DNA of 52,174 bases from Chara braunii (GCA_003427395.1 BFEA01000041.1:2545790-2597963), one strand, 5' to 3'; positions 21,191 through 41,465 are shown, numbered from the stretch's first letter. A program made the numbers and translations. Notes: generated by a model from the sequence alone, not told the origin.

Positions 21191-23105
21191 TTTTCAAGTT
21201 TTCACCCTGGGGCAGGAAAGGGGACAAAAGGAGGTTCCACTGGTGCTGTGAGCCTGTGACGCATAATTTTCTGTAACCACGCGACTTTCTGCGCGAAGCT
21301 GCTTTGGGGGAACGGAACGGGTTAGCCGGGTGGAGTACGTGGGGGTGGGTCGGTTGGGCAAGTTGCATGGATACCCTCGCTTCTTTTTCACTTTCATTTT
21401 CGATTTTGTTGGGCCGGTATTGGGAGAGTCCCGCATAGGCAGTTAAGAGACCGCGCCTTAGAGAGCGCGAGAAATAACTGTTGCCATAGTTTCTTTCTTG
21501 TTCTGTTGGGGCTAAGGGAAGCGAAAATTTTGGAGCAACGAACACGCGGGAATGTCGTTTTCTTTTTCAAAATTTCCTTTCAACTGATGTTGAGCCCCCG
21601 TGGGCTCCTCGGAATTGTTTTGGAGTTTTCGCTCTTCGAAATTTTCTTTTTCTACAATTCGGACTTAGATAAGAGCTTAGGAACTTTGAAATTTTTGCTA
21701 CGCTGTGCTTCTTGCTTGTTCGAGCCTTTTTGTGGCGGGAGCAAAGTTCTAACTGAGAGGCGCTTTTAATCTTGCGTGTAACTGTAACTTTTGGCGGTCA
21801 CAATTGTGATTTTATTCCTCTTCTTAATTCTCTTGCCTTCTTTCCGCCTCCTTTCTTCTTGCTATTCATGTGACAATGTCTCCCTACGATCTGATTGGCC
21901 AAGACGTTGCATGCTCAGCTCGATGCGTGGAGAGTGGCTACGTCCCCCGCACTGCGGCCTGGCCATGCAAAACGTAGGCACTTCCTTTCTACTCCGTTCC
22001 TTTTCGAAAGTGCAATCCCATATCCGCCGCACATGCATGCACACTATAAATCTTGCGAGCGCGATTAAAGCTCTCTCTCTAAAAAAACTTCGAGGATTCT
22101 GAGGGTTAGCGCGATCAGTGAGGGTCGACTAAGATGTAAGTGAAGAGGTGAGTTGATGTGAGGGCCGGGCGACCCGACGGGCTGGTGCTGAGTATGCGGG
22201 GTTGACGTGCGGGCCGCAGCGGACTGTGGCGCATGGGCGAACCTGGCTTGCATACTTGGGCTATGTGGGAGTGACAACTCGGTGTTGGTGCAAGGCGATG
22301 GACCGCCCGCAGTAGAGGTGATGTAGCGTGGAAGAGAGAGAAAGAGGGAGAGAGAGAGATGTGTGTGTGGGATGATGCCTTTCTCCAATCTTATGTCTAA
22401 AATTTTGATTTCCACCTTGACCGACCTTGTGCGGCCATTTTTTTGTCAATTGGACTTTCTGCCTATGGTGTGTGTGTGTTTGTGGAATGAACTCTCGAGC
22501 TTCCCTCACCCCTCCTCGCATAATTTTTGGCTGACTAGTTTGACTCGAAATTTGCCGCTTTCCTGCCCTCACCCCGTGCTCGAATTGGATGCTCCTCATA
22601 CATGCTACGAAATTATTAGCCTTCAAATCTTGTGTGATCAGTGAGAAACAGACACGACGATTGTTCAATGGGGTTAAGATGATGTAGGCCTCCTCGGTGA
22701 TATGGCTTGATGTACACACCTTTGTCGATTTTTGTTTATGGTTGATTGATGCATGAGTTTGATCGATGCTTGAATATGCCTGATCAACTTCTCGTTCCCT
22801 TTTGGAACAGAAAGATCTAACGAATGTTCGGCGGTCCCGACTGATGTATGCCCCGACAGGTAAACGAATGGTTGATTCAAATAGGTGACTGCCCACGGGT
22901 TGCCTTCCCAGTATCCGTTTCTCGACGCACACACGGACTAATGACGGACCAGGCGATCTCCCAACCAAAGGGATAGCCGGTTGATTCGACCCGACAGACC
23001 TAAACGTGGTCTTGCGCAGGATCGATTAAAAGCAGCCCCCGCCTATATGCGCGTCTACAAGACTGCGCTCGAGTCCACGTCTAAAACGCCCAAAACACCG
23101 GTAGC

Positions 23106-23690
23106 ATGGACGATAGGACTCCCTTCCACATCACGGATCGGGAAAGTCTGAGACACCGCCGGTTTCGAGAATACTGGGAGTGGAAAAACGCCTGCCTTCT
23201 CGCACAACCCCGCCCCAACCCTCCGAAATTCCCCTTTCGGACAGGAAACGAACGTGTCTGTGAATGGGACATTGAACGGGCCCTAAGTGCAATCCCCTTC
23301 CCCTCTCAGTTTCCCAGCTCACGCGTAAGCCACATCATCGCCGAGCCTCGTACCGCCATCATTGAGACAGACTTCACCCCCTACCGCCTCGTGTTGCCTT
23401 TTCACTGCCTGACGGCTGCCCCGTGGCACGCACTTGCCTCCTACTGGCCACGAATCCCGTGCTCCGAGTGCCAACAGAACTGTAAGTATCGAGCCGCGGG
23501 GTTCGTGCAACGAACCCGGACCGAAGCCGAACAACGAGCACATGGCCTGCGCCTGAGGCCTGCTTCGTCCAACTCGGAGGCCTGCCACGAGCGGCGCCAG
23601 CGGCTGATCACCCAGTGGGACACCCACAGTGTCCCGGTGGTCCATCGGATACAGGACCGACCGCGACGACCACACTCACACCGGAGGTAG
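23106..23690 (+). CDS. hypothetical 194-aa protein with C52/H76/C119/C122 putative metal site
   Basis: Intact ORF with gtagcATGG start; aligns by eye to a paralogue at 39889-40326; followed by the LINE-type tail motif at 23914. Confidence 0.65.
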   Translation: MDDRTPFHITDRESLRHRRFREYWEWKNACLLAQPRPNPPKFPFRTGNERVCEWDIERALSAIPFPSQFPSSRVSHIIAEPRTAIIETDFTPYRLVLPFHCLTAAPWHALASYWPRIPCSECQQNCKYRAAGFVQRTRTEAEQRAHGLRLRPASSNSEACHERRQRLITQWDTHSVPVVHRIQDRPRRPHSHRR

Positions 23691-23913
23691 CCCCATCTCC
23701 CGAAGTCCAGTATAAATCGGGATTACCAGCTTGCTCAACTACCCCTCAGCTTTCCACCGGAGATCTCAGTTCCGACCTGGGACTCCACCCCCACTTTCCT
23801 AAAATCCTTGGCACACCCCCTTTCCGCACTTCGGGGCCCCCTAACACTCCAAGCATCACAGTGCCCCCCAGTGGCTCCTTCCGTTTATTCCGCATGGTAC
23901 CCAGGCAGACAAT

Positions 23914-23937
23914 GGGACGCTGGACCCGTTTTCCAGC
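23914..23937 (+). repeat. 3'-tail motif copy 1, interrupted
   Basis: gggacgctggacccgttttccagc; a degenerate continuation may resume near 24282-24318. Confidence 0.75.
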
Positions 23938-23939
23938 TA

Positions 23940-24282
23940 GCATGGATCCAATGGACTCAATACGGCTCCATGGAAGGGAGGAACTAGTGTGTAGCGATGT
24001 ATCTGGCACCGTTTTTAGGGTGAAGAGGTTCCCCCTTCCTCCCAATATCCTGCTCAGTCAATCCCCTGGATCCCAGGGTAATCAATGCTGGCAGGAACAC
24101 CCCACAATGGTTTTCCGATGTATTTCAATTTCAGTCTGTATAAGGGACGCTGGGCCCCGCTTTCCAGCAGGTGATGCTCCCCACTAATAGATGGAGCCTC
24201 TCCAACAAGTGGTGTCTGCTCTTATCAGCGCCACTAACACTGGTGGGGAAGTGTTAAAAAAAAAAAAAAGAAAAAAAAAAAA
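23940..24282 (+). mobile_element. 5'-truncated LINE 3' end (motif copy 2 from 24144, polyA)
   Basis: Colinear with the reverse complement of 43589-43870; A-tail 24256-24282. Confidence 0.9.
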
Positions 24283-24379
24283 GGAGCGCACTCGAAACAA
24301 TTATAGATGTAGTCCCCTTGGACTGGGTCCATACTCCAAAAGGGTCCACATCTCGGAGAGGGGGGCTGGGTTGCTCTCA

Positions 24380-25912
24380 GGGAGTGGAGGGACATGGTTG
24401 GCAACATAGTAGACATTCATCCCGATGGAGAAGTCCTGGTCAGCTGTTTCAAACTGCAAAAAAAACACCATCTGACCAGGAATCAAGGATTCTTCTGACA
24501 GAAGACTGATGGCTCCCACCATCGGTAGTCTTCAGGATGAGACTCCTGAGAGAGAGAGAGAAAATTGGATAGCTTCCCAGCCAAACATCCCAGTCTCCCG
24601 TCTAGCGTGTGACCCAGAGACACTAGTCTGGACAGTACCCAACCCACGGAGAGCCGCCAACCAAAACCACTTGCACTCCTTGACAGTTAAAGCTACCTAC
24701 CCGCTGTTCAGGCCAAAGCTCAACCTACGGGACACAGTGGAATCTTCTTGGATGAGACAGTTGAATGTGGCAAAGGAGGCCTTGAAAGGAATACGTCGGT
24801 TTAAGCATAGCAAAACCAAACCTGCTAAGCTGGTGTCGCTGCAATGGCAGATTGAACACAGGTGCCATCCAACAAACAATTGGTTAATAGACCGCACCCA
24901 CTTAGAACAGAACGGGCTTGCCCTACCGTCGTGCAAGCTCTGCAGCACTGCCTACCCATCAAGGACCCGGAGACCATAGAGCATATCTTTCGGTGTGGCT
25001 CTGGAGGTGGTGGGACTGAATCTGGCGTCAGCTAGGCACCTCCACGCAATGACCATGGGACTGGAAAGCGCTGCTTTGTGAGACCTTGAGCCCTGATCAA
25101 CTGAGCGACTACGAACTCAACATGTTTAAAATAGGGAGGAGAGCAGTTTTGTGGGCCATATGGTGGCGCTGCTGCACAACGGAAATGGAAGGTAGTCGAC
25201 AGGATAGACCGGATTTTATTGACTTAATCAGGCAGCACATTCAGACAGAGATAACAATACAATGGGACTTGACAAAAGAAAAGCTGACATTTCTCAACTC
25301 CAAAAAGATGATCCAAACAACTAGCATCTGAAACTTCAGCGAAGACTGGCTGGGGGGGAAACAAGGGGGCAGAACGGCAACAGCGGTCTGGAAAAGGGGG
25401 AATGGGGAGGAACTGGGGAATGGTGAGGAACAGGAAGTGTTGGTTGGAGATTACTCCCTCTCCTTTCAGGATTGGATTCTCTCTGTCCCCCTGAGACCGC
25501 TCTTTTCCAGATATCTTCCCCCCCTTGGAGCTCTCAATAGTAGGGACGTCATGGCATGGGGGGGAAGGACAGTGAGAGAAAAGAAAGGAAGCTGCCAGTG
25601 CAATGAATTATGGATCTGGCATCTAGAAACTTCCAAGAAAAGATGATTAGACCAGGGATGCGTAGCAGCTGCACAGTTAACCCCCAGGTTCACTGGGGCA
25701 GTCAATGCTGGCAGCCAAAATCATGTCTTGTTCTCAGGTGATTCGTCAATGGAGACAATGTTCTGGGACGCTGGACCTGTTTTCTATCAGGTGCTGCTCC
25801 CCCACAAATAGATGGAGCCTCCTCGAGAAGTGCTAGTGGTGCCTGCTTCTATCAGCACCTGAGCACCGTCCGGGGAAGTTACGGTAAAAAAAAAACAAAA
25901 AACAAAAAAAAA
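24380..25912 (+). mobile_element. 5'-truncated L1/Tx1 LINE (zf-RVT, 3' UTR, motif copy 3, polyA)
   Basis: SLQWQIEHRCHPTNNWL...CKLC and GRRAVLWAIW; motif at 25765; A-tail 25886-25912. Confidence 0.9.
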
Positions 25913-25933
25913 GCCTGGAATGATGTGGAATCT

Positions 25934-25936
<3 letters not shown>

Positions 25937-25967
<31 letters not shown>

Positions 25968-26446
25968 AAACGACCTCGGAGGCAGCTTGAGGTGCTGGTA
26001 GGAGCAGTCACTTCAAGCTGGTCCGGGGGAGGCTCCATCTATTGGTGGGGAGCAGCACCTGCTGGGAAACGGGCCCAGCGTCCCAACTTACAGATATCAC
26101 AGGATTCACAGTAATTATACATATAGGCCGCCTGATGAGGGTGTACAGTCTCTGACGTATGGTGTGTGTGATGTGTATGTTTCGAAGTACATGGTGTGGT
26201 GCTGTCTGTGGCTGCATTTAGCAGCATTGGCAATGCTGTACTGAGTCGTAGTATTTAGCAGCATTTGGCAGTGCTGTATTGAAGCCTATCTTCTGACTTG
26301 TGATGCATGAACTCTGCCTGTAGTGCGTGTGATGTATGTGTTTCTAAGATGTGGTGTGATGCAGTCTGTGGCTGCATTTAGCAGTATTTGGCAATGCCGT
26401 ACTGAGTCCTAGCATTGAGCAGCATTTGGCGGTGCTGTATTGAATC
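25937..26446 (-). mobile_element. retroposed 3' end (motif copy 4) with internal ~161-bp tandem duplication
   Basis: T-run 25937-25965, motif to 26084, repeats at 26166-26283 and 26327-26444. Confidence 0.85.
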
Positions 26447-26447
26447 C

Positions 26448-27430
26448 TTTTTTCTTTTTGTTTTTTTCCTTTTTTTTTATCTATTGGTGGGGAGCAGCAC
26501 CTGCTGGAAACCGGGTCCAGCGTCCCATAATCCTAACTTCTGATGCATAAACACTTTCTCCGCTGGCCGCTCTTCTAATGAGAACAGTAAGGTAGTCAGT
26601 CCCTGGCCGAGGGGGGGGGAGGGGCGAATGGACAGAGAAGGGGGAAGGGGGGGCAAGGGGGAGGGGGATCGGAAGCTGTAGAGTGTAGGGAGGAGGGTAG
26701 TACATTGTTTAAGACAGTAGAGGATGGTCAGTCATAGATGAGGACAAAGTAGGTTGGTTGATGGACGACTTGGAAATGGTGCGTTGGCAGTCTTTCCCAC
26801 AGCCTGTCAGAGAGGAGCCAGGGATGCCATGTGAGGGTGTTATCATCATTGAGACTGCAGAGTCTCTGGTTGAGTCAGTCCATGTCGCCGCAAAGCTGTT
26901 CCCTGGTCTTTGATTTTTCTCAATGTCCGGCTCAGTGACCATCTTATTCTGCAGCTCTTTCCATGCTGCCCGAGTATGAGCTGAGATCGTGTCTATTATG
27001 GTTGACCGAGCTCGCATGAAGCCGTAGCTATGCTGTTTTCTCTCATAGGAACAGTGCATCCTCCAGGCTACCATGAGCACGGTTAGTCTGGAGTATGTGA
27101 AGAGATTAGTCATGAACGGGGTCCATTCCCTGACCTCTGTCAGGGGGCGGGCTACTAGGAGGGTGGGCACTTCCCAGGGGAGGTGGTGATCTGTAAGGTA
27201 GTGCCACGCTGCATCTCACCATCTCCACAGTTGGAGCACCATGGGGCATTCCAGCAACTTGGCAGCGAGCAGTGCTCCAGGGTAGGTCTTCTGTTGGGAA
27301 GTGTGAGGGAGCAGTAAGAGCACAGTAGGGAGAGCAGACCTTTTTCCTCCAGGTCAGTCGATGATGTGATCCAATCCGGGGTAGGCCGACATCTATGTAT
27401 GATTTGCCACTGAAGGGCTCTATGGCTAGT
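26448..27430 (-). mobile_element. 5'-truncated LINE (zf-RVT, motif copy 5, polyA)
   Basis: Minus strand WQIIHRCRPTPDW...CAL...LEHCSLP and RLTVLMVAW; motif 26479-26526; T-run 26448-26478. Confidence 0.85.
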
Positions 27431-29021
27431 CCGACAAATATGTGAGAGGGTGCCAAATCCCGGTGGGGGACGATGGGAAAGGGAGGCACAACTACTGGAA
27501 AAATGCGCGGTCTTTGCATTAGCCGGGGCCCCACCTGCGGCCCCACCCCATCTCTGACTACCTCGTTTGCGAGGCCCTATGCTTGCTGGCGTCCCCTCTA
27601 TATAGTCTTAGGAGTAGTGGTAGGAAGGTAGTGACAGGCAAAAAACAAATGCGCTAGTTTCTCCGAGCCTGCTTTTGCCGACCCTGAATTTAACTGCTCT
27701 CCGAGTTTTGCTGAGCCTGGGTCCAACTCCATTTTCTTTATGGTACTCTCACAGGAAGGGAAAAAAAAGAAGAAAAAAAAAAAAATTGCAGGCGTGAAAC
27801 TCACAAAACAAGAAAACAAAAAAGCTCTGGCCGTGATTGAGGTTGTATACATTCTTGGAAGTGCTAGTGTGAGTGTGCCTCAGTGAGGGCATCTCAGCCC
27901 CGTGGCCAGATTGTCAGATTCCAGAACAGATTCCAAAACAATTGTCAGATTCCAGAACAACCAAACAAGAACAAAAAATCGAAAAAATGGATTCAGCCGT
28001 GAAAATGGCTGGATACATTCCTCTAAGTGGCAGTTTAATCAGGGTTACAATCCTCTGAGCAGATCACGGATTCCGCCCTGCCTGGTTGGCAAGGGACTCA
28101 TAACAAACACACGAAAAATAAAAAAAAAGAAAACAGCAACTTTCAGAATGTGATCGTGTTTGCCGTAAGATGCATTCTGTAGAGAAAGACTGTGAGCACG
28201 GCCTCCTAGACTACCCTGCCCGACATCATTGCAGTACAGAAAGCTTTTTTTCTTTTTCCTTTTCCTTTCACGCGGGGGAAAAAGAAAAGTAAGATTTATG
28301 GAACTCGCCGACCCTGGGTCCCACCCACGAATTCTTCGGGAACTGGCAAAAACTCGCAATTTCCCAACACTGCCAAAAAAAAAAAAAAAGGGGGGGGGGC
28401 ACAGTCACGAAATCAGTTTCTAAATGCATTTCAAACTGCGTTTTAGCAGTCTAGGCAGGGCCCAAGATTCAAATATAGTCGAAACTCCGCTTCGCAGAAA
28501 TGTAGCACCGTGGAGTTTGTAACTGCAGTTGAGTCAGGCACGTGGCTCGGTTTCTTTTTTCTTTTTTTTTCAATCTCGGGCGTGGCCAAGGCATCTCGGC
28601 CGTGGTGCGACCACAGGACAAGATGCTCTTTTTTTCTTTTCTTTGGTTGTTTACAGAATGTGGCCAAGGCATCCTGGCGTGAAACTCAGCAAAACACGGC
28701 AATAGGGAAAAAAAAAAAAGAAGGGGGGGCGGAAAAGCAACAACTCTTCGGAAGTGAAAGCTGCTGGATACAGAACATTGGGCACAGGTGAGAATATGCC
28801 CTTCCAAAGGGCGTTACAGCCCTCAGCACACACGGCTGTACGAGAAAAAAAAGAAGAAAAAACAGCAACAACTCTTTGGACGTAAAACCAGCTGGATACA
28901 GAATCTTGAGTACATGTGAGAGTGCCCCATTGGTTGCAAGTGTCAGTTGTCTGTGGAAAGCGCCCTGCCTCGTGGGCAGGGTACTAAAACTAACTTGAAA
29001 AAAAAAAAAAAAAACAAAAAA

Positions 29022-29994
29022 NNNNNNNNNNNNNNNNNNNNNNNNNNNNNNNNNNNNNNNNNNNNNNNNNNNNNNNNNNNNNNNNNNNNNNNNNNNNNNN
29101 NNNNNNNNNNNNNNNNNNNNNNNNNNNNNNNNNNNNNNNNNNNNNNNNNNNNNNNNNNNNNNNNNNNNNNNNNNNNNNNNNNNNNNNNNNNNNNNNNNNN
29201 NNNNNNNNNNNNNNNNNNNNNNNNNNNNNNNNNNNNNNNNNNNNNNNNNNNNNNNNNNNNNNNNNNNNNNNNNNNNNNNNNNNNNNNNNNNNNNNNNNNN
29301 NNNNNNNNNNNNNNNNNNNNNNNNNNNNNNNNNNNNNNNNNNNNNNNNNNNNNNNNNNNNNNNNNNNNNNNNNNNNNNNNNNNNNNNNNNNNNNNNNNNN
29401 NNNNNNNNNNNNNNNNNNNNNNNNNNNNNNNNNNNNNNNNNNNNNNNNNNNNNNNNNNNNNNNNNNNNNNNNNNNNNNNNNNNNNNNNNNNNNNNNNNNN
29501 NNNNNNNNNNNNNNNNNNNNNNNNNNNNNNNNNNNNNNNNNNNNNNNNNNNNNNNNNNNNNNNNNNNNNNNNNNNNNNNNNNNNNNNNNNNNNNNNNNNN
29601 NNNNNNNNNNNNNNNNNNNNNNNNNNNNNNNNNNNNNNNNNNNNNNNNNNNNNNNNNNNNNNNNNNNNNNNNNNNNNNNNNNNNNNNNNNNNNNNNNNNN
29701 NNNNNNNNNNNNNNNNNNNNNNNNNNNNNNNNNNNNNNNNNNNNNNNNNNNNNNNNNNNNNNNNNNNNNNNNNNNNNNNNNNNNNNNNNNNNNNNNNNNN
29801 NNNNNNNNNNNNNNNNNNNNNNNNNNNNNNNNNNNNNNNNNNNNNNNNNNNNNNNNNNNNNNNNNNNNNNNNNNNNNNNNNNNNNNNNNNNNNNNNNNNN
29901 NNNNNNNNNNNNNNNNNNNNNNNNNNNNNNNNNNNNNNNNNNNNNNNNNNNNNNNNNNNNNNNNNNNNNNNNNNNNNNNNNNNNNNNNNNNNNN
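29022..29994. other. assembly gap (N run)
   Basis: N characters. Confidence 1.
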
Positions 29995-30249
29995 TCTGTC
30001 AGTCTTTCTTCTGTTCTGCCCTCCCTGATTCTTACTAAGTTTTTTTATGTGCCCAACTGAGCACCCTTACGTAGTGCCAAACAGTCGGTGGTTCCTCGTC
30101 TGGAGTGCCTACTGCACTCTTAGGGGGGCCGCTCGGTTCGGAATGTCTGTGTTGCCTGTGGGTGATGACTGGTGCTCGTCGGAGTGACTCCATGGCTCAG
30201 TGGGCGGTGGGAACCAACAGTCTGCGGGGTTCAATTGTGATGTGAGTAG

Positions 30250-30720
30250 GGCATGTGCTGCTTTCCTCCGTGTTGGATGTGTGGACTGCCTCGTCTGTGC
30301 TCTGCGGCTGCCTTTCTGCCTTGCTGCCTGTCCCACTGGCTTCACATGTGGTTCTCTGTAAATTGCTGTGTTTGCTGCGTGGTGTGGCCGTGTTGTTGGT
30401 ATTGCCTTGTGCTTTGCTGCTCCGCTGCCTTGCCGCTCATCCGGTGGACGTGCCTTCCTTGCTGCTTGTGTGCCTTGTTGCTGGTGCCCTGTGCTTCGCT
30501 GCACGGTTGCCGAGCTGCTGGTCCATTTTCCCTGTCATCCCTTGAAGTGTGGCTGCCTTGGACATTGGTTGTGTTGTCGTGTGCTTCACTACATGGTTGT
30601 CGCGCTGCATGTCCTGCGTGCCATGTCGTTCCTTGCAGTCGTTTTTGGCGTTGTGCACCCGTGTTGCCTCTACTGTGTTGCCTGTTGCTCCTGGGTTGTC
30701 GTCCGCTGCTATGTTCCTCA
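30250..30720. repeat. TG/TGC-rich low-complexity degenerate repeat
   Basis: Recurrent tgctgc/tgtgct units; gtgcttc(g/a)ct(g/a)ca(c/t)ggttg occurs twice. Confidence 0.7.
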
Positions 30721-31530
30721 TGAGGATAGTTTGCCTTCAACAAGGGTTAAAGGGTTCATGACCCAAACCATCAAATACGAAGATTCCGCACATTGTCGAG
30801 GGTTCAGTCTCGTGCTGAGTCGGTGCAACTCCTACAAAACAATCTTGTTATCATCAGTTTTATTTTTTTTCGGTCTTTCGTTTTTTTCAGTTTTGCTTGT
30901 TTTATGTGCTTGCGTCGTCTGCCCTCTAGCCTCCTTTGTGCATAGAGCCTCCTGCCATCGCTCTTTGTTGCTGCTTGTTCGCTGATACCTTGTTGTCCTA
31001 TGCCGTTGTGTCACTTGTGTGCCCATCCGCCTCCCCCTTGCCCTCCAGCCTTCGCCCTTTGTTGATGCCACATGCCTTTCTCCATTGCTGTTTTTTTTCT
31101 GCCTTCCCCTAGTTGCGGCATATTGTTTGTTTCAGCTCACGAATTAGTACCCTGGGGCTCCAGTCCTTGCATCTTTTTAGGGAAGTCAGCGAGGTCGTGC
31201 ATACCCAGTCGAATGGAATATTCGCTTGGATCAGGGTGTGATTCGTTCGATGTTTTGATGTTTGTGCTATTGGCATTATTTATGTTGTGTCCACTCGTGG
31301 TCAATAGGTGGTGTTGTTTTCGGCGAATTTTTCATCGAAACTGCCGACTTTCCCTGAATTTTTTGTTTTTTTTTTGTTTTGTTTTTTTGTCTGATATGTA
31401 TAAGCTTTAGGGCAGAGGGGCGCCAGACAACTTTTCCCTTTTTGTTTTCTGGCTCAGCACTATTTAGTTTAAAAAAGGACTGATGAGTAGCTTCGGGCAC
31501 TTTTTCTTCAAGTGTTGCAGGGTAGGACTC

Positions 31531-33238
31531 GACAACGATAGTCAAGTGCAGATGGAAGAGAGACTCTCTAGTGTCTGAGCACAACCTGCGCCACATCCCA
31601 TGGACTACGTACGCCCATATAATGCCCACCTCCCATAGAGCTCTTCAATGGCAGATAACCCATCGGTGCCTTCCGACACCGGACTGGGTAACAAGGAGAT
31701 CAAATTTGGAGCAGAAGGGAGTCCTATCCCCTATTTGCGCCCACTGTGGTCCCGGCACCCAACCACGAAGGGCGGAACTAGAGCATTGCCTCCTCGACTG
31801 CCCAATGGCAAGAAGAGTATGGCAATGGCGGGATGCGATGTGGCACATGCTCAAGGGCGAGGTGTTCCGCTGGGACGTAGTTCTTATTCTACTAGGAAAG
31901 TGCAAGAATACTCCCCCAGCATGGACACCCTTTCAGCGCAACCTGTTTAAACATATGAGGTTGGCGGTCCTTATGGTTATCTGGCGTGAAAGGTGCTCAG
32001 TGGAAAGGCAAGGGCGGTTTTCGGCCTCTATCAAGCCAAGGCAGAATTAGTAGAAATCGTTCATGCTAATTTGGTAAAGGCCAGCAGTAAACTCAGGCAT
32101 GCGTTAATGGCTACAAGGGAGGGGCAGAATAAGAGGAGAGTTGTGGCTGCCTTCTGTGAGCTTTGGCTCGATCCTCAGAGGAAGATGGCAGAGGTGAACG
32201 AGAATGGGATTTTGATTTGGAAAAACTGGGCTGCTCAGGATGACCAGTGGTCATACCGGAGGGCGGAATGCTTCACTACACCTCTACCGGGCCAAACACG
32301 GAACGCGTTGACAGTACTCACTTAGGACGCTGTCCAGGGTCATCACGTACACAATGGGCTAGCTTCCCAGCCTCCACAGGTGGCGCAAGCCCCTCCCCTG
32401 CCCACGCAAATGTCGCCACCAATGCCGTCAGTCTCCCCCCCGGCTACCCCGTCGGCCCCCCCACCCTCGCTGCCCTTGAGCCCTCCCCCTACCACCCCTC
32501 CACCGCCCTCATCCTCCTCTCCACCAACACCCCCTCACCCCCCTCCCTCCCTGCCCAGAACCCATGGTCGGGCCAGCCGAATTCAGTACACATCAGCAGG
32601 TGATCTCACTGAACAAGGATGGGACTGCAACAACTACAAGGCATCTCAAGGATGACACTGGTTCTTCTGGACAACAGCAGCAATGAAGCGGGACATCGGT
32701 TCATACGGACTGCTGGCATGTGGGCAACTGGCTCAGAAGGCTTTGTAGTGCTACCCGCCAAAATCTCTCTTTTGTAGATGAGCCCGACAGCCTGTTGGTG
32801 TCACAAATGCATGCTACCTCCTCTACCTGCACTCATGATACTGGCCATTTCATTACTGACCATAGGCTCTAAGGTAGGTTAGCATCACAGATTACTGTGC
32901 AAATCATGCTGGCAAAACTTCTTTTTCAGCAAGAGAACTCGGTAGCTTACTGGTATCATAACGACNGTCACTACAAATGCATGTTGGTTTTTCTAGCTGT
33001 AGTCGTGGCAATGGGGCATACCACTTCTCACCAAGGGAGGTCTGATAGGCATGCCGCTCAGGCCATTGTGATCACATGAATAAGTACAACATTCAGGGAC
33101 GCTGGACCCGATTTCCAGCAGGTGCTGCTCCCCACCAATAGATGGAGCCTCCCCAGCGGTGCTAGCGGTGTCTGCTCTTACCAGCACCCCTAGCTTCCGC
33201 TTGGCTGTTTTTTGGGGGAAAAAAAAAAGAAAAAAAAA
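31531..33238 (+). mobile_element. 5'-truncated L1/Tx1 LINE with TSD (zf-RVT, motif copy 6, polyA)
   Basis: LQWQITHRCLPTPDW...CAHC...LEHCLLDCP; TSD aggactc at 31524-31530 and 33239-33245; empty-site paralogue at 34352-34550. Confidence 0.93.
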
Positions 33239-33592
33239 AGGACTCTGTACTTTAGCTAATCTCCCGCCATTCCTGATGACACTTGTCCCCACTTATTGTT
33301 CAGTTGGCAGAAACACCGAATTCGGGAAACATTTTGGCGAACTTTGAAAGCTACTTCGAATAGGGTTTTATAGTGCTGTTCATTTTATTTTTTTCCGTTT
33401 TGTTTTGCCTGTTTGTTTTTTTGATGCTTGTATTATGAGCCTGCATAGTTTGTTTGCAAACGTTTCGACGACATTGTTTGTAGTGATGCGGCGAAAAACC
33501 CCGAATTCTGGGCCTTCCATTAACCTCGTGTCGTTGTGTCTTATATAAACGTGGCTCATTGCATCGCGCGGTGCAATGGACTCATCACCACA

Positions 33593-33621
33593 CACATACA
33601 CACACGCACACACGCACGCAT

Positions 33622-33680
<59 letters not shown>
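33593..33680. repeat. (CA)n microsatellite
   Basis: Direct reading; resumes at 34094-34108 after the MITE. Confidence 0.97.
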
Positions 33681-33682
<2 letters not shown>

Positions 33683-34091
33683 GGGTCTCGCTCCACTACT
33701 ATACACTCTCCGAATTTGGAGAGTTCGGCATCGCTCCACTTACTGTACACTATACACGTGCAAAAATAGCTTGGATAACTGTCAGATATCGGTCGGAGAT
33801 TGCACTCTCCGTCGGTGTATAGTTCCCAGCCTGCAAAAGTCGTTACTCGGATACTCCTCAAAGGAAACCACAGACCCGCTGCGTTTTTGTANGGTGAACC
33901 TCAAGTCTGGACGGACAAATTGCTGTCTTCTAGTGCTGTTAGGGTGTTGCGTAGTGAACTCAGGAACTGGAGACTTTGTATAGCAGATAGTAAGTGGAGC
34001 GACGCCGGGTTCTATACATTTTTTCGCGGTCTGACAGCTATACGGCAACTATACGAAATTGTGTATAGCGGACAGTAGTGGAGCGAGACCC
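33683..34091. mobile_element. MITE, possibly PIF/Harbinger-like
   Basis: 18-bp perfect TIR gggtctcgctccactact/agtagtggagcgagaccc, subterminal inverted repeats, AAA on both flanks. Confidence 0.85.
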
Positions 34092-34769
34092 AAACACACA
34101 CACACACCATTACTTTTTGCGGCAGTGCCACAAAAACCACGTGCTTCAAATCCGAATTTTCGGCACAAGGGCATGATGGAAAGATGCATGCGCTCATGAG
34201 GGCACATCACGCAGGGATCGGTGGAATGGGACTGGCCGTCCAGTAAGGGAACCGCGGAAAGCGGCGCCCCTCGCTTGGGCATGCAGGAAAGTTCAAGGCA
34301 CGACACGGTAAGTGGTCCGTCGGAGGGGAGTGACGCAAAAGAATGGAAATTAGAGGGGCGCCAGACAAGTTTTCCCTTTTTGTTTTCTGGCTCAGCATTG
34401 TTTAGTTTAAAAAAGGACTGATGAGTAGCTTCGGGCACTTTTTCTTCAAGTGCTGCAGGGTAGGACTGTGTACTTTAGCTAGTAATCTCCCGCTATCCCT
34501 TCATGGCCTTAAGGTTATTCCTGATGACACTTGTCCTCACTTATTGTTCTGTATTGTATGCTTGCTGGGGATTAGTAACCGGAGTGGCACCGTCACAGAA
34601 TACAAAGAGGGCCTTTTGTCAGGAAAAAAAAAAAAAGAAAAGACTGGCTGAGATCAAGGGTGCAGCCAGCATTTTTTTTTTTCCCCCTTCCCTCTTTTCT
34701 CCTCTCTCTTGTTTCTTTTTTTTTTAAAAGGGCAACGGGCTTGAGATGTCAGCCCCAGGAAATCCTTAA

Positions 34770-35020
34770 ACCACCAGTACGTTTCCCAGCCATTTTTTCA
34801 AAGTCGTGCCTTGCATGCTGCTGCAACTTTCAAGGCTTGGCCTCTGGATCAAAATGACTGGCGGCACCAGCCAATTGCATGCTGCTGCAACTTTCAAGGC
34901 TTGGCCTCTGGATCAAAATGACTGGCGGCACCAGCCAAAAGGAGGCCCACTCCGGTTTCTCATTTTTTGGCGCGCAGGGCATTTCCAGCCCCAGAGAAAA
35001 GTGCTTGAGAAGTACGATTG
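34770..35020. mobile_element. degenerate copy of the TTAA-flanked MITE, with internal ~64-bp tandem duplication
   Basis: ttaa|accaccagtacgtttcccagc; colinear with 36819-37009; duplication at 34812-34938. Confidence 0.7.
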
Positions 35021-35280
35021 CATCTGAATTCGAACTTGGGTCAGTATTTCAACAGTTCATTGGTGTACCAACTGAGCTAGGGCCCTGGTGGGGCAGCCAG
35101 CTTTCATCAGTGAAGGGCACCATTTGTCTGTTTATGTTTGTTTCTGGCATGAATCATCAACAAAGGTAGCAGTTGATCACCCCAACTGCTAGGCTAGTCA
35201 GAGAAAGCCTGCTGACTGAGACTGACAGATCAGATTCTTTTCCTGCTCACAAAATCTCGCTTCATTTTCCTTCTTTTTTT

Positions 35281-35335
35281 TGTGTGTCATCCTTGCACAG
35301 GGGGCCTGCTAATCTTCTCTGGATCATTCCAATTT
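35281..35335 (-). pseudogene. U6: U6 snRNA retropseudogene fragment
   Basis: Minus strand aaattggaatgatccagagaagattagcaggccccctgtgcaaggatgacacaca plus A-run; matches central U6 with the ACAGAGA box mutated. Confidence 0.92.
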
Positions 35336-35366
35336 CCCTGTTTCATTTTTTTTGAACTTTTTTTTT

Positions 35367-35565
35367 AAGGGGTAACTTCAGTAGAGTCACAAAAACGAGT
35401 TGTACTTGCACTATGGGCCAAGATACAGTTAGCAATTGCATTTCGGGCACCCTACCTGGCCAGAAAGCTTGGTCGTATACATTGCCCAGACTGCAATTCT
35501 AAACTGTATCTTGGCCCATAGGGCAATCATAACTCATTTTTGTGACTCCCTCCTAGTTTCCCCTT
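35367..35565. mobile_element. foldback MITE with ~90-bp imperfect TIRs
   Basis: gagtcacaaaaa/tttttgtgactc and ctatgggccaagatacagtt/aactgtatcttggcccatag are inverted pairs. Confidence 0.85.
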
Positions 35566-35664
35566 TTTTTTTATATGAGAAGGCCCTTTTTTTGGAAGCC
35601 CTGCATCCCAGCAGTGGTGAGGGAACCACTGGGATTGAGGTCTTAGCTATCGGGCTTCTGCATG

Positions 35665-35704
35665 TATTGGTGGGGTGAGGCACCTGCTGGAAACCACAGC
35701 GTCC
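35665..35704 (-). repeat. 3'-tail motif copy 7, degenerate
   Basis: tattggtggggtgaggcacctgctggaaaccacagcgtcc. Confidence 0.75.
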
Positions 35705-35799
35705 TTCAGATATAACATTTGCATACAGTGTAAGCTGTTCCATTTGGTTCGTGGGGCCACAGCCTTAACTTTTCCTGTCGTCGAGCTCACATTTCCCTC

Positions 35800-35846
35800 G
35801 TTTGTTTGTTTGTTTGTTTGTTTGTTTGTTTGTTTGTTTGTTTGTT
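35800..35846. repeat. (GTTT)n microsatellite
   Basis: Direct reading. Confidence 0.97.
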
Positions 35847-36299
35847 TTTTCTTTTTACATTTCCCTCGTTTTCTAGTTCATCGGTCAGCTTCAATTTCCT
35901 TTTGACTGCTGACAGCTTCTTAGAGCAGATGAACGACATGTCATCATCCTGGCCAATTCGGTTGGGATACGGGTGGCGTCAGGAATAGCAGGCAGCCACA
36001 TTAATGAGGGCAAAGGAAATTAGCAGCCAGAGGTCTGCACTTTGCCCGGTTGCGTTTTGTCGCTTGTGGGGCTTTCTGTTTCGGGTAATGTTGTGTCCGA
36101 CTCGCCATTTATAGGGAATTCGGGGTCATTTCGGGGTTGAGCGAAAGAAAAGAAGGGTATGGTTGCGTACAGGTATAAGAGTGGTCGTTCAAGCGGTAGC
36201 TGCAGGTCTTTAGGACGGGCGACCGACACAGGTCGTTCTGGCGTTGTGGCAGGCAGCATCCCTGAATTCCTCTTCGGGAGGAAGGGCGCACCCAATCGG

Positions 36300-36575
36300 A
36301 GGGAGGCAGGGACAGAATGGGAGGGGCTTGTGGGGTCTGTTCTGTTTGTTGTTTCCCTTTCCAGTTTTTTTTTTTTTTCTGGTCAATGCTGACAGAAGGC
36401 TCCCATTCCCTGAGTAACTGTCTGAGTAACTATCTGAACACCAATCTGATGTAAGAACTGTTTTGCAGCAAGATGTATCAATGGGACGCTGGACCCGGTT
36501 TCCAGCAGGTGCTGCTCCCCACCAATAGATGGAGCCTCCCCGAGTGTTTTCAAAAAAAAAAAAAAAAAAAAAAAA
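36300..36575 (+). mobile_element. LINE 3' end (motif copy 8 from 36483, polyA)
   Basis: Near-consensus motif, A-tail 36552-36575, upstream gtcaatgctgacag sub-motif; 5' boundary uncertain. Confidence 0.85.
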
Positions 36576-36600
36576 GAGATAGTGGCAACTTCCCACTGGC

Positions 36601-36670
36601 TACCTGGTTGATCCTGCCAGTAGTCATATGCTTGTCTCAAATACGAAGCCATGCATGTGTAAGTGTGACA
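36601..36670 (+). pseudogene. 18S rRNA 5'-end fragment
   Basis: tacctggttgatcctgccagtagtcatatgcttgtctcaaa...aagccatgcatgtgtaagt is the start of SSU rRNA; flanked by ttcccactg direct repeats. Confidence 0.95.
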
Positions 36671-36818
36671 CTTTAGAAAGGGAAGGGGATTTCCCACTGC
36701 AAAAGAGGATCATTGTAAAGCCTGAAATGCGTGTATCTGGACGTGCCACTGGTTGGATAGGGGCAGAAAATGGCCACGGAGTCTGCTTTCCTCTGACAAA
36801 CACGCCCAGATTCCTCAA

Positions 36819-37009
36819 CCCACCAGTACCTTTCCCAGCTATTTTGCCACGGCGTGCTGCGTAACGCGGGAGGCCGGCGGGGTTTGGTGCTACCAGATCG
36901 AAATGGTTGGCGGTGCCAGCCAAAACGAGTCCCGCAATGGTTGTTTTTTTTCTCGGCGCGGAGGGTGATTTTAGGCTCGGCATCTATCGCTGAGAAAGGT
37001 ACTGGTGGT
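36819..37009. mobile_element. piggyBac-like MITE
   Basis: TIR cccaccagtacctttcccagc / gctgagaaaggtactggtggt; flanks tcaa (36815-36818) and ttaa (37010-37013). Confidence 0.75.
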
Positions 37010-37099
37010 TTAATAGCAGGGTCATTGTTTTCTTTTTCACGTGCTTTTTTCTTTGCTTCTTCCTTTTGATCGCATTGAGATCGCAGCAACGTATTTTAC

Positions 37100-38420
37100 G
37101 ACGACGCTGCATACAAGTCCACAAATCACAAGATGAGTTGGATCCGGGAGAAATTCGCGACCTGCAAGGGATGTGAGAAGGGAGCGCATGATTTCTTCCT
37201 GATCCAACCGATCTCAGCGTCAGTCACAACTGTGATAAGCAAGTTCAATGCGGACAGACAAATCATGGACAGTTGACGAAGTGTATGGTGTGACCGTCCG
37301 AAGTCCGCATCTACCCGTGGTCTCCTCGGAAACAGCAGTGCCCAGAGGAGAAACGGGAACAGATGATGGCCAACCACTTTGGGTGGAATTCTGCCACATA
37401 CCGATCGAAATCCAAGCAGCCTTTGTCAACCATTTCGGACAAAAGTTTGATATCATGGAGTTTATTGCCTCGCCCTCCAGTACAAAAGAAGGCTGGCCAC
37501 CCAGCCAGACACATCCGGGCATGGAGGCTGGAGCGGCGGCGCTGCTGGAAGAGTCAGCGGTGTCCAGCAACCCAGGAAAGAAGCCGCTGTGGTTGGAGTG
37601 AGCAGGAAAGGGGTGCCAGCGATGGGCAGGCTGTGCACGGCATAGCCATATGAGCCCTCCCCCTGTATGTACAGAAGCATGATGACTATCTGATGCTGGC
37701 CTTAGACCTGCCGGAGGGGCAGGTTTTCACAATCGACGACGTCATTCCAAACGGACTTGGGGGAAAGACGTTCAAGATCCACACTGCACATGCATCCCGC
37801 CCCTTGTGGTTCAAATGCGAGTCACACAAAGACCGACTCCCTACAGCACCCGGCTAGACGGGCAAGATCAACGGGCTGGCTGTTGCGTGAGCCATTTAAG
37901 CAAACACATTGGCAGACAGTTGATCAGGGGAGCAAGGGGTAGGTTTACATCGACGAGAGGAAAGAAAGGGGAGAAGGGGAGATGAGAGAATGGACATGGG
38001 AGAGGCAGGGGGACCAAGATTGGATCACTAGACCCCCAGACACATGGACCGCCCCCCAGGCCAGTGGAACCACATGTCAAGGGGCCTGCTCAGCGCTGTC
38101 CCCCCCTGCCTCTACAATGGAGACCCAAGGAAGGCGGCAGGCGACAGGGCCTGCAAAACCCGCTGCGCAGAATTATTTGGGAAAACTGGCCTGCCGGATT
38201 CATGGCAACAGGTGACCCCCAAGAAAACCAAAAGACAGGATGAGAAACCTGCCCACTCCAGTGTCCAGGAACAGCCAGGGGGCAAGGGGCTGATCATCCA
38301 CAAGAACACTCCCAAGGCCAACGGGGTTATAAGGGGGGGCTGGAAACAGATATACAACCTTAGCAGATTCAAAAGACACAGAAGGATGAGGGAGGGCCCT
38401 TAGGTGGCGAGGAGCAGGGG
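37100..38420 (+). pseudogene. LINE ORF1-like fragment
   Basis: PLWVEFCHIPIE resembles the plant L1 ORF1 WV..lP motif; decayed Cys/His knuckle near 37800-37850; low-complexity tail. Confidence 0.5.
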
Positions 38421-38449
38421 GAAGCGGGGGGATAGGAAGTAACAGTTTT

Positions 38450-38513
38450 AGCCACGTGATGCCTGTAGTCCGGGCTGTGATAAGCCACGTGATGCCTGGA
38501 GTCCGGGCTGTGT
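38450..38513. repeat. 33-bp tandem duplication
   Basis: agccacgtgatgcctg(t/g)agtccgggctgtg occurs twice. Confidence 0.9.
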
Positions 38514-39888
38514 CCACACTCGGTGGTTTCCCGTACCCCTAAGGGAAAATCCCATGTAGAACCCCGAACTTCCCCGAAGTACAGATTCAAGATAATGGGG
38601 AAAAGTGGTGTTTCATTTTCCTTTTTCTTTTTCCGTTTTGTTTAAAGAGGGGGGGGGGATGGGGAGAGGAATAGAAAATGCAATTCGGGTCTGGCGTGGC
38701 CGGTTAGCGGCCGCGCCAGGAAATTCAAGAAACAGTTGGGACTTAGCGGGAGTGGGAATTTTGAATTTTTGCGCGCGTGGCGGTTTCTGAATTTTTGCGC
38801 GCCCCGTAAACATGTTCTCCTGCTCTGCATCCCCGCGCCATCTTCCCTTCTTGCTGTGCATCTCCTTCCTGCATGTCTCTTCGTCTTCCCTCTAAGCGAA
38901 GTCCGATCCCCTCCTCCTCCTTTCCCTGCGAATGATTGGCTGTCTGAATGGGATGGTCGGGCCAGTGTGGTGGCCGCGGGAAGCGCACCCCACTTGGACG
39001 ACCACCCCAATCACGCAGACCATTCGACTCGCCTCCTTCGATCTTTCTGGAACGTTTGCCCTTCTTCTGTCCCGGTCATCTACACTCCGCGCTTCGCGCA
39101 GCCTCTCTGCCACCTTCCACGCTATAAATTTTTGCAACCCCTTCCTCTCACTCTCTTTGATCTCGGCTGCAAGCTGCGCACGCTATGCGTGAAGCCCGCG
39201 CCGCCGGAAAGGCTTGACGTGCCCCGTGCTGGCGGAGTGACGGCGGGTGGCGGAGTTAGCGGTAGACTTGGGGTAAGGCAGTTAGAGGGACTGAGCGGTG
39301 GTGGAGATCATACGCCGACAGTAGCAGGGCCTTGTGGCTATGGTTGTCGGTGGTTTGACGGATTGGGGACTGGGCCCGGAGCGGCCAGTTGAGAGAATTC
39401 TGTATTTTTAAGACGAAGTTTTTTCTCCATTGCTGCTTTGTCCCCGTGTGATGTGTGCAAGTTCCCCAATGTGGGGGTAGTGTATCGTATGCCTTCTCGG
39501 GTATGGAAGTCCATGGATGTGATTGTCTCAGTAAGGGTTGATGATCATAGGGTACCAAGTGTTGATGGCTTACATGAGTGCATGAATGCGTCGGTCCTTT
39601 CCGTCTCCCTCCCTTTTTGATTAATTGCCCTTAATCCGCACAAGTGTGTCTGATATGTGCCAACCTCCTCTCGCCATCTCTCTCTCTCTCTCTCTTCGTG
39701 CGGGGGTCGGGACTCCCAGGGGAAGCGGATACTTTCAGAGGGATCGGCCAACCGTGTCCGCGCGAAGCGGCCGACCTCTCTATCTCCCCCAAGGGTTCCC
39801 GACGCCGCGTTCGGGTGGAGGTTACAGAGAAGAGACGGAGAAAGAAAGTTGGGTGCATCCTTCTTCGGCGGTGTTCGTCGATCTTTGC

Positions 39889-40326
39889 ATGGAGTCAGGT
39901 TTCGTCTCGACGAACGGAACTGTGGGTCGTGGCCCGAGCTCGGACCTTGTCTCAGAGCGTCGTAGCGCGCTTCCGCCCTTCCCGATCACAAACAACGATG
40001 GCATATACTGCGATGCGGGTGTGCGGAGCCTGCTGCGACGCACTGAGCCAATCCATCTTTACAACCCGACCTAGGCGTGCCACATAGGCGGGAGTGGGTT
40101 TGTGCTGATTGAGCGATTTGCTTCCCCGCCCTTAATTTTGCCGTACACAGACCTCACGGTGTTGCCCTGGTCTGTCGTGCACGCCACCTAGTGTCCGCGG
40201 TTTAATTGTCACTGGTGTCGCCAGGGAGACTCGCGCTCGTGGCAACGGTTGGTCCTGGGGTACGAAGGGGCCACTCGATTCCCCGAACTCTCCCACAACA
40301 CGGGTGTGCTCCCCGCCCCTTTCTGA
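39889..40326 (+). pseudogene. paralogue of the 194-aa C-H-CxxC protein, two in-frame TAG stops
   Basis: Read-through gives ...PPFPITNNDGIYC...T*ACHI...LIE...PLILPYTDLTVLPW...T*CPRFNCHWCRQ; stops at 40072-40074 and 40189-40191. Confidence 0.7.
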
Positions 40327-41465
40327 ACTTGGGTCCCATCGACCTGCCCAACCCCGGGCGAGCCCGTGCCGCGCCGTCCGCACGGACTCGATGAGTCTGA
40401 CAATGAAGCCTGAACCTGTTCTTGGGGCCTTCGACCCCAAGGGCTGCGCGAACCACGCGCCTCGAGGAACGGAACTTCGTCCCCGTCGGCTTCGTTTCTC
40501 TTCTCCCCTCCCCTCTCGTTTTGTTTTCTTTCCTTTTTCCATGGGGGAACGGCGGTCGGCCCGTAGGACGTCGTCGTTTGCCCCTAGCGACAGCTCGAGC
40601 CCCAGCCTGGGCACCTTGGCCTGAAGCAAGAGTCCCCCGTTTCGACTGGGTGGCTCAACCCCCATGGCTAAAAATCCTCAGCCACGCCCCTAATAACTCT
40701 GATCGGTGTCCGAAGTACAGAATGTCGCGCGCGGCGTGAGGTTGCGCATCACAGGCTGCGCAAGGGGACGGGGGGGGACAGGAAGTAAACAAGGGGAGCA
40801 CTCAGGGAGTGAAGTAAGGGCACTGCAGCAGGCTCAACCACACCAAGCGGGGACCAGATCAGGATGTATCAGAGCAGCAACAGACACGCTTGACACATCG
40901 AGATGGTAGGACCCACTCAAAGAGGCCTTCCGTCCAAACCCATGGAAGTGGATGAACCATCGGACCCGCTGCCCCCCCCACCACTGGGCCACCAGAAGTG
41001 ATAACGACTGATAACTTCCCGGATCCCACGGAAAGCCCGCATCAACAGGTGGATAGAGAACAAAGAAAAGCAAGGGGACTACCGCCTGATATGCCATGAC
41101 TGGACAAACGTGGACTCAACAGTACCCCTTCGCCCCCTATCAGAGTTCCCAGATCCCTTCCCCCCCTCCTCATTGTCCCTGGTCCCCATGAGTTGGTATG
41201 GCTGTGCATGAAGAGGAAAATGTCTGGATAAGCTGTAACCAGCTAGATGGAAATGTCTGATCTGGCGGCCATATAAGGCTGAAGAGGCTGATTACAGAAG
41301 GTACAGCAAGATGGGTAGGGAAGGTATTTGAGTGAATTCATTATGACAGGAGAAATAGATGTAAGAGGCTGACAGTCTGGAAAGATAAGACACAGCCAAC
41401 CCTCAGTTTCTAACTTCTAACACATTCAAATGCTTCTCATAATCTTCCCGAAAAACTATATATAA

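Follow-up and report, generated by a model that had tools for sequence, protein, structure and literature searches.

MMTV encodes its superantigen (Sag) in U3 of the betaretroviral LTR, and the product, a membrane glycoprotein of type II topology, targets T cells of the host. Plant Ty3/Gypsy elements carry extra reading frames (aORFs), which include ORF1 of Ogre, the env-like frames of Athila and Bagy2 and the antisense ORFs of Grande, RIRE2 and Retand (PMC7264820). These frames are placed in the internal region of the element, where they either precede gag, behind the 5′ LTR, or follow pol, ahead of the 3′ LTR (PMC7264820).

Based on our analysis of 52,174 nucleotides of Chara DNA, the whole of which is referred to as the window, we propose that a further arrangement occurs in a streptophyte alga. 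Two units, about 17 kb apart, carry copies of a small-protein gene. We interpret both units as LTRs of one Ty3/Gypsy retrotransposon family from Chara, with C. braunii as the likeliest species: unit 1 is a solo LTR whose ORF is intact and unit 2 an older, decayed LTR, an explanation to which, as a whole, we assign a probability of about 0.88. The Chara ORF resembles the aORFs in being extra, family-wide, without an assigned function or similarity to host genes, and conserved to about the same degree as element proteins. It differs from them in lacking similarity to Pfam families and in lying within the LTR, upstream of the primer-binding site and thus outside the internal region in which aORFs are placed. 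With MMTV Sag it shares its position as a protein gene inside a retroelement LTR. However, the Chara ORF is downstream of a TATA box (in R or U5), no transmembrane segment is predicted in its product and its carrier is an algal Gypsy element; homology between the two was neither found nor expected. The features used in the argument are listed below in window coordinates.

21243..21246, plus strand: 4-bp target-site duplication around solo LTR 1, left copy (GTGC)
21247..23860, plus strand: solo LTR 1 (unit 1), 2614 bp, Ty3/Gypsy; starts TGTGAG and ends ATCACA; empty-site contig; ends checked
21891..21900, plus strand: CCAAT-type box CTGATTGGCC; the same motif at the same relative place in locus L002 (46045), a variant in unit 2 (38932)
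22044..22051, plus strand: TATA box CTATAAAT; conserved counterparts at 46172 of L002 and 39122 of unit 2
23106..23690, plus strand: uninterrupted ORF of 194 aa, a member of the orphan protein family embedded in the LTRs; supported by homologues and dN/dS
23755..23823, plus strand: conserved non-coding block downstream of the ORF; contains TTTCCTAAAATCCTTGGCACA
23861..23864, plus strand: target-site duplication around solo LTR 1, right copy (GTGC)
23897..23937, plus strand: fragment of a LINE/SINE 3′ tail motif in the flank, 37 bp beyond the end of LTR 1; motif 23914-23937
23968..24283, plus strand: separate SINE-like element that has both poly(A) and the tail motif; over 288 bp it shares 82% identity with minus-strand 43869-43590
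38476..40753, plus strand: decayed LTR 2 (unit 2); 5′ end uncertain (38476 or 38509); 3′ end reads GCGCATCACA
39910..40230, plus strand: decayed remnant of the ORF core, interrupted in frame by stops (40072-40074, 40189-40191)
41461..41629, plus strand: poly(A)-bearing LINE/SINE tail outside the unit, 707 bp past where LTR 2 ends; motif 41466-41489

Boundaries of the two units and layout of the full elements

Unit 1 has what is expected of a solo LTR: it stands isolated, no internal element region was found near it, its TG..CA ends carry short inverted repeats and a short target duplication flanks it. What sets it apart from an ordinary solo LTR is an intact frame together with promoter-like boxes, which might in principle leave it capable of producing a protein. 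A DNA contig of run X1 provides the empty site, joining 21242 to 23861 at single-copy depth and skipping 2618 bp; four letters at the joint are compatible with either side. This single contig carries the continuity of the flanks, and the left flank has no second copy in the sequence searched. Within the unit, the TATA box lies ~1.06 kb upstream of the ORF and, with the CCAAT-type box, would constitute a promoter. The non-coding block downstream of the ORF is 75% identical to 47856-47919 of L002, whereas the ORF DNA reaches only 59% there; the block occurs once per locus, in every case 3′ of the ORF, and the summed contig depth over it is very high. RNAalifold gave a weak energy and no convincing covariation for this block. 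The ORF found at the equivalent position in L001 bears no resemblance to the antisense ORF (22261-22968) that lies upstream of the gene here.

Full elements at other loci reveal the architecture to which these landmarks belong. In L006 and L007, both reached via gag homologues, ORF-bearing direct repeats flank a complete gag-PR-RT-RNaseH-integrase region (gag with a CCHC knuckle, PR, RVT_1, RT_RNaseH and rve). The ORFs are found at 8267 and 19726 in L006 and at 8264 and 19362 in L007, 11.1-11.5 kb apart. The LTRs of these two C. braunii elements measure ~2.7-2.9 kb and the members of each pair are 94-95% identical. The termini in L006 read TGAGACG or TGTGACG at one end and GTTACA at the other, and the duplication AGAA flanks the full element. 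In L002 gag, its CCHC knuckle and protease come ~300 bp after the ORF, and inspection by eye revealed no canonical poly(A) signal from the ORF to the end of the LTR; a 3′ LTR was not found at this locus, where the element is truncated after protease by AT-rich DNA. The landmarks of solo LTR 1 are collinear with the LTRs of all three elements. Throughout, the ORF lies 170-260 bp upstream of the 3′ end of the LTR, before a putative, iMet-like primer-binding site that follows the 5′ LTRs and reads TGGTATCGGAGCC (TGGCATCGGAGCC in L002). The former is one base off TGGTATCAGAGC, the plant iMet primer-binding site; a search of the examined loci for a tRNA gene with which to compare it found none.

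Two traits of these elements are unorthodox. A purine-rich tract is absent before the 3′ LTR, where a palindromic junction, ..CGTCACA TA TGTGACG.., is present instead, and the LTR end is split: the final ~10 nt, present in six of six 3′ or solo LTRs, are missing from all three 5′ LTRs. The missing polypurine tract and the unequal LTR ends are a lineage-wide departure from the textbook layout and no argument against LTR identity.

Unit 2 displays the same series of marks in a decayed state: the variant CCAAT-type box, the TATA box, the ORF remnant and a 3′ block at 40666-40689. Its terminus, GGCGTGAGGTT..TCACA, is common to 3′ or solo LTR ends in L001 and L006, while the LTR end in L005 is a shortened variant of it; L005 and L001, like LTR 2, end in TCACA. 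No target duplication matching LTR 2 was found when one was looked for. As the original prediction stated, similarity between the two units at the DNA level is almost nil apart from short blocks, and neither of them contains RT or endonuclease. An assembly gap (29022-29994) lies between the units and touches neither; nothing was read across it. Taken together, the LTR of this family would read, from 5′ to 3′, a TGTGA terminus, a CCAAT-type box, a TATA box, a leader of ~1 kb, one sense ORF of 164-194 codons, the conserved non-coding block and a TCACA terminus.

The open reading frame and its protein family

The original prediction described an intact ORF at 23106-23690 and a stop-containing frame at 39889-40326 that aligned with identical FP-x8-C and C-x23-H spacings. 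Both frames and both spacings are as described. Are the two frames homologous? The direct match is marginal: tblastn within the window returns E = 0.03-0.08 only, and tblastx of one unit against the other missed the match, which is split by the stops. The pairwise local alignment scores 72, as against 29 +/- 4.8 for shuffled sequences (none of 4000 shuffles reached 72), and the unit 2 frame is the best non-self match of the ORF across all six frames of the window. Intermediates settle the question, since a metagenomic ORF, P0005, matches window positions 39976-40230 at E = 2e-10 (5e-10 and 52% identity for the middle piece alone) and the ORF of L002 matches the unit 2 remnant at E = 5e-5.

The protein family is real and was hitherto unrecognized, and it is carried on retroelement-derived units that have no RT of their own. 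An exhaustive HMMER search of 1.84 billion representatives returned four matches only: an exon from a chimeric gene model of C. braunii, a pair of short ORFs in assembly GCA_003427375.1, and P0003; a profile search added P0005. P0003, a 1032-aa tandem-repeat protein with 30% identity over 60 residues per repeat, is a doubtful member and was left out. The gene model, GBG61242.1, fuses the ORF to a DCP1 gene 29-40 kb away. No member of the family matches Pfam, zinc fingers included, and the ORF protein shows no similarity to the gag or pol of its own element. Searches with a profile against PDB sequences, by exact-sequence look-up, with a word-indexed protein search restricted by its length window and by features in the ESM Atlas (two members) were likewise without match. 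The Atlas model of P0005 has a pLDDT of 0.35, and its structural neighbours, at TM < 0.36, are meaningless; AlphaFold2 yielded low-confidence models, with a mean pLDDT of 41.6 from a 5-row and 48.4 from a 10-row alignment.

Conservation does not bear out the C/H/C/C zinc-binding site that was initially suggested. C52, C119 and C122 are among the invariant residues and are the only invariant cysteines, but the family has no invariant histidine, H76 aligning with F or Y in other members. The isoelectric point is 8.2-10.1 for the whole protein and 10.4-12.0 for its C-terminal third, and no transmembrane segment is predicted in the family. The product is predicted to be soluble and basic, with a core marked by the three cysteines and a Pro/aromatic motif, and with a strongly basic tail rich in Ser, Asp and Glu at the C-terminus.

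Is the frame a gene of the element? All 11 LTR copies seen contain it, and in five of them it is intact; nine copies can be translated over their full length (the five intact ones and four with one or two in-frame stops), and the other two, window unit 2 and L001b, have degenerated. The frame is kept open over 164-194 codons in five lineages whose amino-acid identity is no more than 30-50%. Between elements, dN/dS is 0.11-0.28 in the ORF frame as against 0.7-2.4 in the shifted frames, whereas it is 0.95 between the two LTRs of L006. At the DNA level the ORF is 76-92% identical, compared with 21-73% for the LTR segment upstream of it. Because dN/dS is low in the ORF frame, high in the shifted frames and close to 1 between the LTRs of one element, these comparisons of sequence show the ORF to be a real gene of the element, under purifying selection in replicating lineages and decaying neutrally after insertion.

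Weighing the alternatives

The original prediction envisaged a different vehicle: a non-autonomous, protein-coding retroposon with a LINE 3′ tail at its end, for whose copying the LINE machinery would act in trans. The tail motif is indeed present at 23914 and at 41466, the latter with poly(A), which places same-strand tails 224 bp and ~1.2 kb downstream of the two ORF copies, and the L002 unit too is abutted by a tail motif. The units, however, do not run into these tails, which lie outside the LTR boundaries. LTR 1 ends at 23860 in TCACA, its duplication and the empty-site contig set the tail beyond it, and that tail, ending at 23937, has no poly(A); the poly(A)-bearing tail at 24144 is part of the separate SINE. 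Elsewhere the linkage fails as well: the motif is absent from 85 kb around eight other LTR copies (0/8 further copies tail-linked in L001, L003, L005, L006 and L007), and L004 likewise contains none. The ninth copy, in L002, was inserted into an opposite-strand tail, which it interrupts and which abuts its upstream end. LINE-dependent SINEs do occur in the window (23968-24283 and 43590-43869) and share their tail with 5′-truncated LINE copies, but the ORF units differ from them in being tail-free, in having LTR termini and 4-bp duplications, and in occurring in pairs around gag-pol, in full elements with an RT and integrase of their own. With ~10 copies of the motif in 52 kb, nearness to a tail comes cheaply, and closeness to so abundant a sequence is weak evidence for linkage. 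We consider LINE mobilization extremely unlikely; the tails would be the remains of older LINE/SINE copies beside which the LTRs landed.

Two further explanations accept the LTRs and question the gene. One holds that the ORF is untranslated and that its conservation reflects constraints on LTR RNA or DNA, such as packaging or reverse-transcription signals. In favour of this, no RNA reads fell on the ORF of the window copy in three oligo-dT RNA-seq runs, of which 6-13% of reads were sampled. Nor could a fold be predicted for the protein, and the adjacent non-coding block, better conserved than the ORF between subfamilies, indicates that cis constraints exist there. Yet neither a conserved RNA structure nor covariation was found in that block, and the frame-specific pattern of substitution, together with an open frame maintained across five diverged lineages, speaks against it; we hold this explanation to be very improbable. 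The other regards the ORF and the CCAAT/TATA region as a captured host gene or nested foreign element, a passenger of the LTR without a role in its life cycle. The unit does resemble a small gene, with promoter boxes, GT donors after the putative start and an ORF, and transduction and nested insertion are discussed as possible origins of plant aORFs (PMC7264820). Against this stand the lack of any homologue outside LTR contexts among the representatives searched and the presence of the gene in all five divergent subfamilies seen, with purifying selection along element lineages, which is unexpected for a passenger. A mere passenger is thus very unlikely, although capture may be the distant origin of the ORF.

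A gene inside the LTR

What are the implications of a gene of a Ty3/Gypsy element that resides in its LTR? Location inside the LTR means that each element has the ORF twice and that solo LTRs keep it. Placed as it is, after the TATA box but ahead of the primer-binding site, the ORF would come before any other reading frame on an LTR-initiated genomic RNA, and each LTR, solo ones too, would carry a promoter plus a gene. The product would most likely be an accessory factor, nucleic-acid-binding or nuclear, that acts in transposition, transcription or counter-silencing; the accessory or anti-silencing role put forward in the original prediction is possible. We tentatively entertain a bolder idea, which is rather doubtful at present: each LTR might be a self-contained gene, with CCAAT/TATA promoter, leader and ORF, and solo and paired LTRs together might be a dispersed, multi-copy source of a trans-acting accessory protein that the lineage needs. 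If so, the protein might act as a transactivator, might suppress silencing by the host or might assist the unusual end-joining step to which the split LTR terminus points.

The finding also bears on annotation, since an orphan ORF in a Chara gene model can stem from an LTR, GBG61242.1 being a case in point. Little is understood of the extra genes that LTR retrotransposons carry, and Chara, a streptophyte alga close to the land-plant lineage, offers an orphan gene inside an LTR under clear purifying selection: a gene that is duplicated per element, survives on solo LTRs and would come first on the genomic RNA, and hence a testable candidate for a retrotransposon accessory factor.

Homologous frames and a restricted protein family

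The window is eukaryotic DNA rich in repeats, in which translation recovers two frames as described in the original prediction, including the stops in the second:

23106-23690: intact ORF of 194 codons (unit 1)
39889-40326: homologous frame with two in-frame stops (unit 2)

Their local alignment score is 72 against 29 +/- 4.8 for shuffled sequences, a value reached by none of 4000 shuffles, and across six frames of the window the 194-aa ORF has no better non-self match than the unit 2 frame. A tblastn search within the window is marginal alone (E = 0.03-0.08). The homology is settled because the relative P0005, found additionally by profile search and derived from an ENA metagenome, bridges both units: it matches window 39976-40230 with E = 2e-10, and the middle piece alone with E = 5e-10 and 52% identity. 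The observation of two homologous frames is thus confirmed. An assembly gap (29022-29994) lies between the units and touches neither; no reading was taken across it.

The 194-aa ORF has no match in Pfam or among PDB sequences and no neighbour in the Atlas, and an exhaustive HMMER search of 1.84 billion representatives matched four proteins. One is the Chara braunii protein GBG61242.1 (P0001), a chimeric gene model whose exons are strung over 78 kb of the C. braunii locus L002 (10001-88218), fusing a Myb/SANT-like exon, two more exons, an LTR-borne ORF (47269-47736) and a DCP1 gene (86650-88215). Two others, P0002 and P0004, stand alone as ORFs on short contigs belonging to assembly GCA_003427375.1. 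The membership of P0003 is doubtful: some eight repeats arranged in tandem make up this 1032-aa predicted protein, every one of them matching residues 87-145 of the window ORF at 30% identity, which may reflect either chance or a decayed fragment of the gene that was amplified in tandem. The family is real and restricted.

Structure of the units and their Ty3/Gypsy relatives

The units are Gypsy LTRs, and embedded in them is an orphan gene that is under purifying selection. In L002 the ORF spans 47224-47745, and gag, a CCHC knuckle and an aspartic protease come after it within some 300 bp. The window and L002 have in common the order CCAAT-type box, TATA box, ORF and non-coding block, with these sequences in both:

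CTGATTGGCC: CCAAT-type box
CTATAAAT: TATA box, preceding the ORF by about 1.1 kb
TTTCCWAAAATCCTTGGCACA: contained in the non-coding block 3' of the ORF

A single contig from the DNA sequencing run X1, at single-copy depth, joins window position 21242 to 23861 and omits 2618 bp, four letters at the joint fitting either side. The omitted piece begins with TGTGAG, ends with ATCACA and is flanked on both sides by GTGC; together with the empty-site contig, these ends and flanks are the signature of a solo LTR. This reading was tested by a search with the L002 gag, which retrieved three C. braunii loci (L005, L006 and L007). L006 carries the ORF twice, at 8267 and 19726; the two copies enclose gag, PR, RVT_1, RNase H and rve integrase, arranged as in Ty3/Gypsy elements. 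The repeat pair is 94-95% identical, and the whole is delimited as follows:

L006 6352-20509: full element, TG..CA ends, duplication AGAA

L007 is arranged like L006, the ORF of L005 is located in the 3' LTR, and a putative iMet-like primer-binding site, TGGTATCGGAGCC, follows all three 5' LTRs. Since the window is without gag or pol of this Gypsy family, unit 1 is a solo LTR (21247-23860). Unit 2 is an isolated decayed LTR at about 38476-40753, its 5' end and duplication being insecure; it carries the CCAAT-type box, the TATA box, an ORF remnant, the 3' block and the terminus GGCGTGAGGTT..TCACA common to related LTRs. A tandem duplication of ~33 bp (window 38449-38514) across its presumed 5' junction creates two candidate TGTG starts, 38476 and 38509.

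The LTRs have asymmetric ends. In each of the three 5' LTRs, ..GAGGT leads directly into the primer-binding site, and the last ~10 nt (GCRCGTCACA) are missing; these nucleotides are present in six of six 3' or solo LTRs. A single copy of them, with TA added, is found immediately upstream of the 3' LTR and makes the junction palindromic, ..CGTCACA TA TGTGACG.., in place of the expected polypurine tract (L006 9030-9052, 17540-17557 and 20489-20509; L005 18378-18394 and ~21150-21165; L002 47983-48005; L007 9021-9043; window 40733-40753). Textbook reverse transcription would not rebuild this right LTR end.

The conserved block after the ORF (window 23674-23840), one copy in the window and one in L002, always stands 3' of the ORF. 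Its summed DNA contig depth, which is not a copy number, is about 83,000 (single-copy flanks about 10, ORF core 1500-1800) and suggests that the LTR lineage is very abundant. On the 4-kb contig L001, two LTR copies of different subfamilies stand tail to tail (1270-1791 (+) and 2614-3037 (-)); the second, L001b, is a pseudogene with one stop and one frameshift, and an AT-rich insertion of 533 bp, including a palindrome of 177 bp (2154-2330), splits the 3' end of the first.

Relation to the LINE tail

The original prediction had both units ending in a LINE 3' tail, as non-autonomous protein-coding retroposons mobilised by LINEs. This reading is refuted, as the tail lies outside the units and the homologues are unlinked to it, the latter being a result that the original prediction had itself named as refuting. 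The 24-nt motif occurs in about ten copies in the 52-kb window, seven on the plus strand. Its copy at 23914 sits past the LTR end and duplication of unit 1 and lacks poly(A); the poly(A)-bearing tail at 24144-24283 is part of a separate SINE, with a second copy at 43590-43869. At unit 2, 707 bp separate the LTR end from the tail start. The motif is absent throughout L001 and L003-L007, which hold eight further LTR copies. It is present in L002, where an opposite-strand tail is interrupted by the 5' end of the LTR, which indicates that the element inserted into the tail. Other repeats of the window, too, recur in C. braunii sequence with identities reaching 87%; together with the tail motif in L002, they place the window in C. 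braunii or a close relative. The tail itself belongs to LINE-family copies, whose ORF2 C-termini give a weak zf-RVT match (E = 0.001 in the second):

24509-24979: 5'-truncated LINE copy, running into the tail motif at 25765
31571-32050: 5'-truncated LINE copy, running into the tail motif at 33095

Elsewhere in the window, a degenerate U6 snRNA match (35251-35356 (-), Rfam 59.8 bits) and, some 150 bp further downstream on that strand, a tRNA-like stretch ..GCTCAGTTGGTA..GTTCGAATTC.. (35040-35110 (-)) may be the remnant of a U6- or tRNA-headed SINE.

The embedded gene and its proposed working

The ORF is a gene. Independent elements from one subfamily give a dN/dS of 0.11-0.28. The two LTRs of L006, a single element whose repeats began to diverge only on insertion, give 0.95, and the two shifted frames of the same alignments give 0.7-2.4. 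Between elements the ORF DNA is 76-92% identical, as opposed to 21-73% for the LTR segment upstream, and an open frame of 164-194 codons is retained at an amino-acid identity of just 30-50% between subfamilies. Five of nine full-length translated copies are intact; the other four have one or two in-frame stops, as expected of old insertions, and window unit 2 and L001b are further degenerate copies. The protein is unrelated to the gag and pol of its element. The gene is shown to belong to the LTR and to be under selection along the lineages that replicate. No RNA reads fell on the unit 1 ORF in three oligo-dT RNA-seq runs, 6-13% of each being sampled.

Among the invariant residues of the protein are C52, W54, the core FxP..L(L/V)LP..L...PW....WP...C..C and R/S positions in the C-terminal third. 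The C/H/C/C zinc-binding site proposed originally is unsupported, because its histidine aligns with F or Y in other members, leaving just three invariant cysteines. The protein has a basic pI, 8.2-10.1 overall and 10.4-12.0 in the C-terminal third, and no predicted membrane span. Two AlphaFold runs gave mean pLDDT of only 41.6 and 48.4.

How might such a gene work? The LTR promoter would be the conserved TATA box, which lies about 1.1 kb 5' of the ORF. In that case the ORF would lie in R or U5 and would be the first long frame of the genomic RNA, before the primer-binding site and gag; promoter and gene would also be kept together on solo LTRs. ORFs inside LTRs are not described in a review of plant retrotransposon aORFs (PMC7264820), and a full-text search for LTR-encoded proteins returned mainly the MMTV superantigen and foamy-virus microRNAs. 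The Chara ORF works like a plant aORF, but differs in its position inside the LTR. Its tail, basic and rich in Ser, Asp and Glu, suggests an accessory factor that binds nucleic acid or is nuclear, and that might act in transcription, packaging, integration or counter-silencing.
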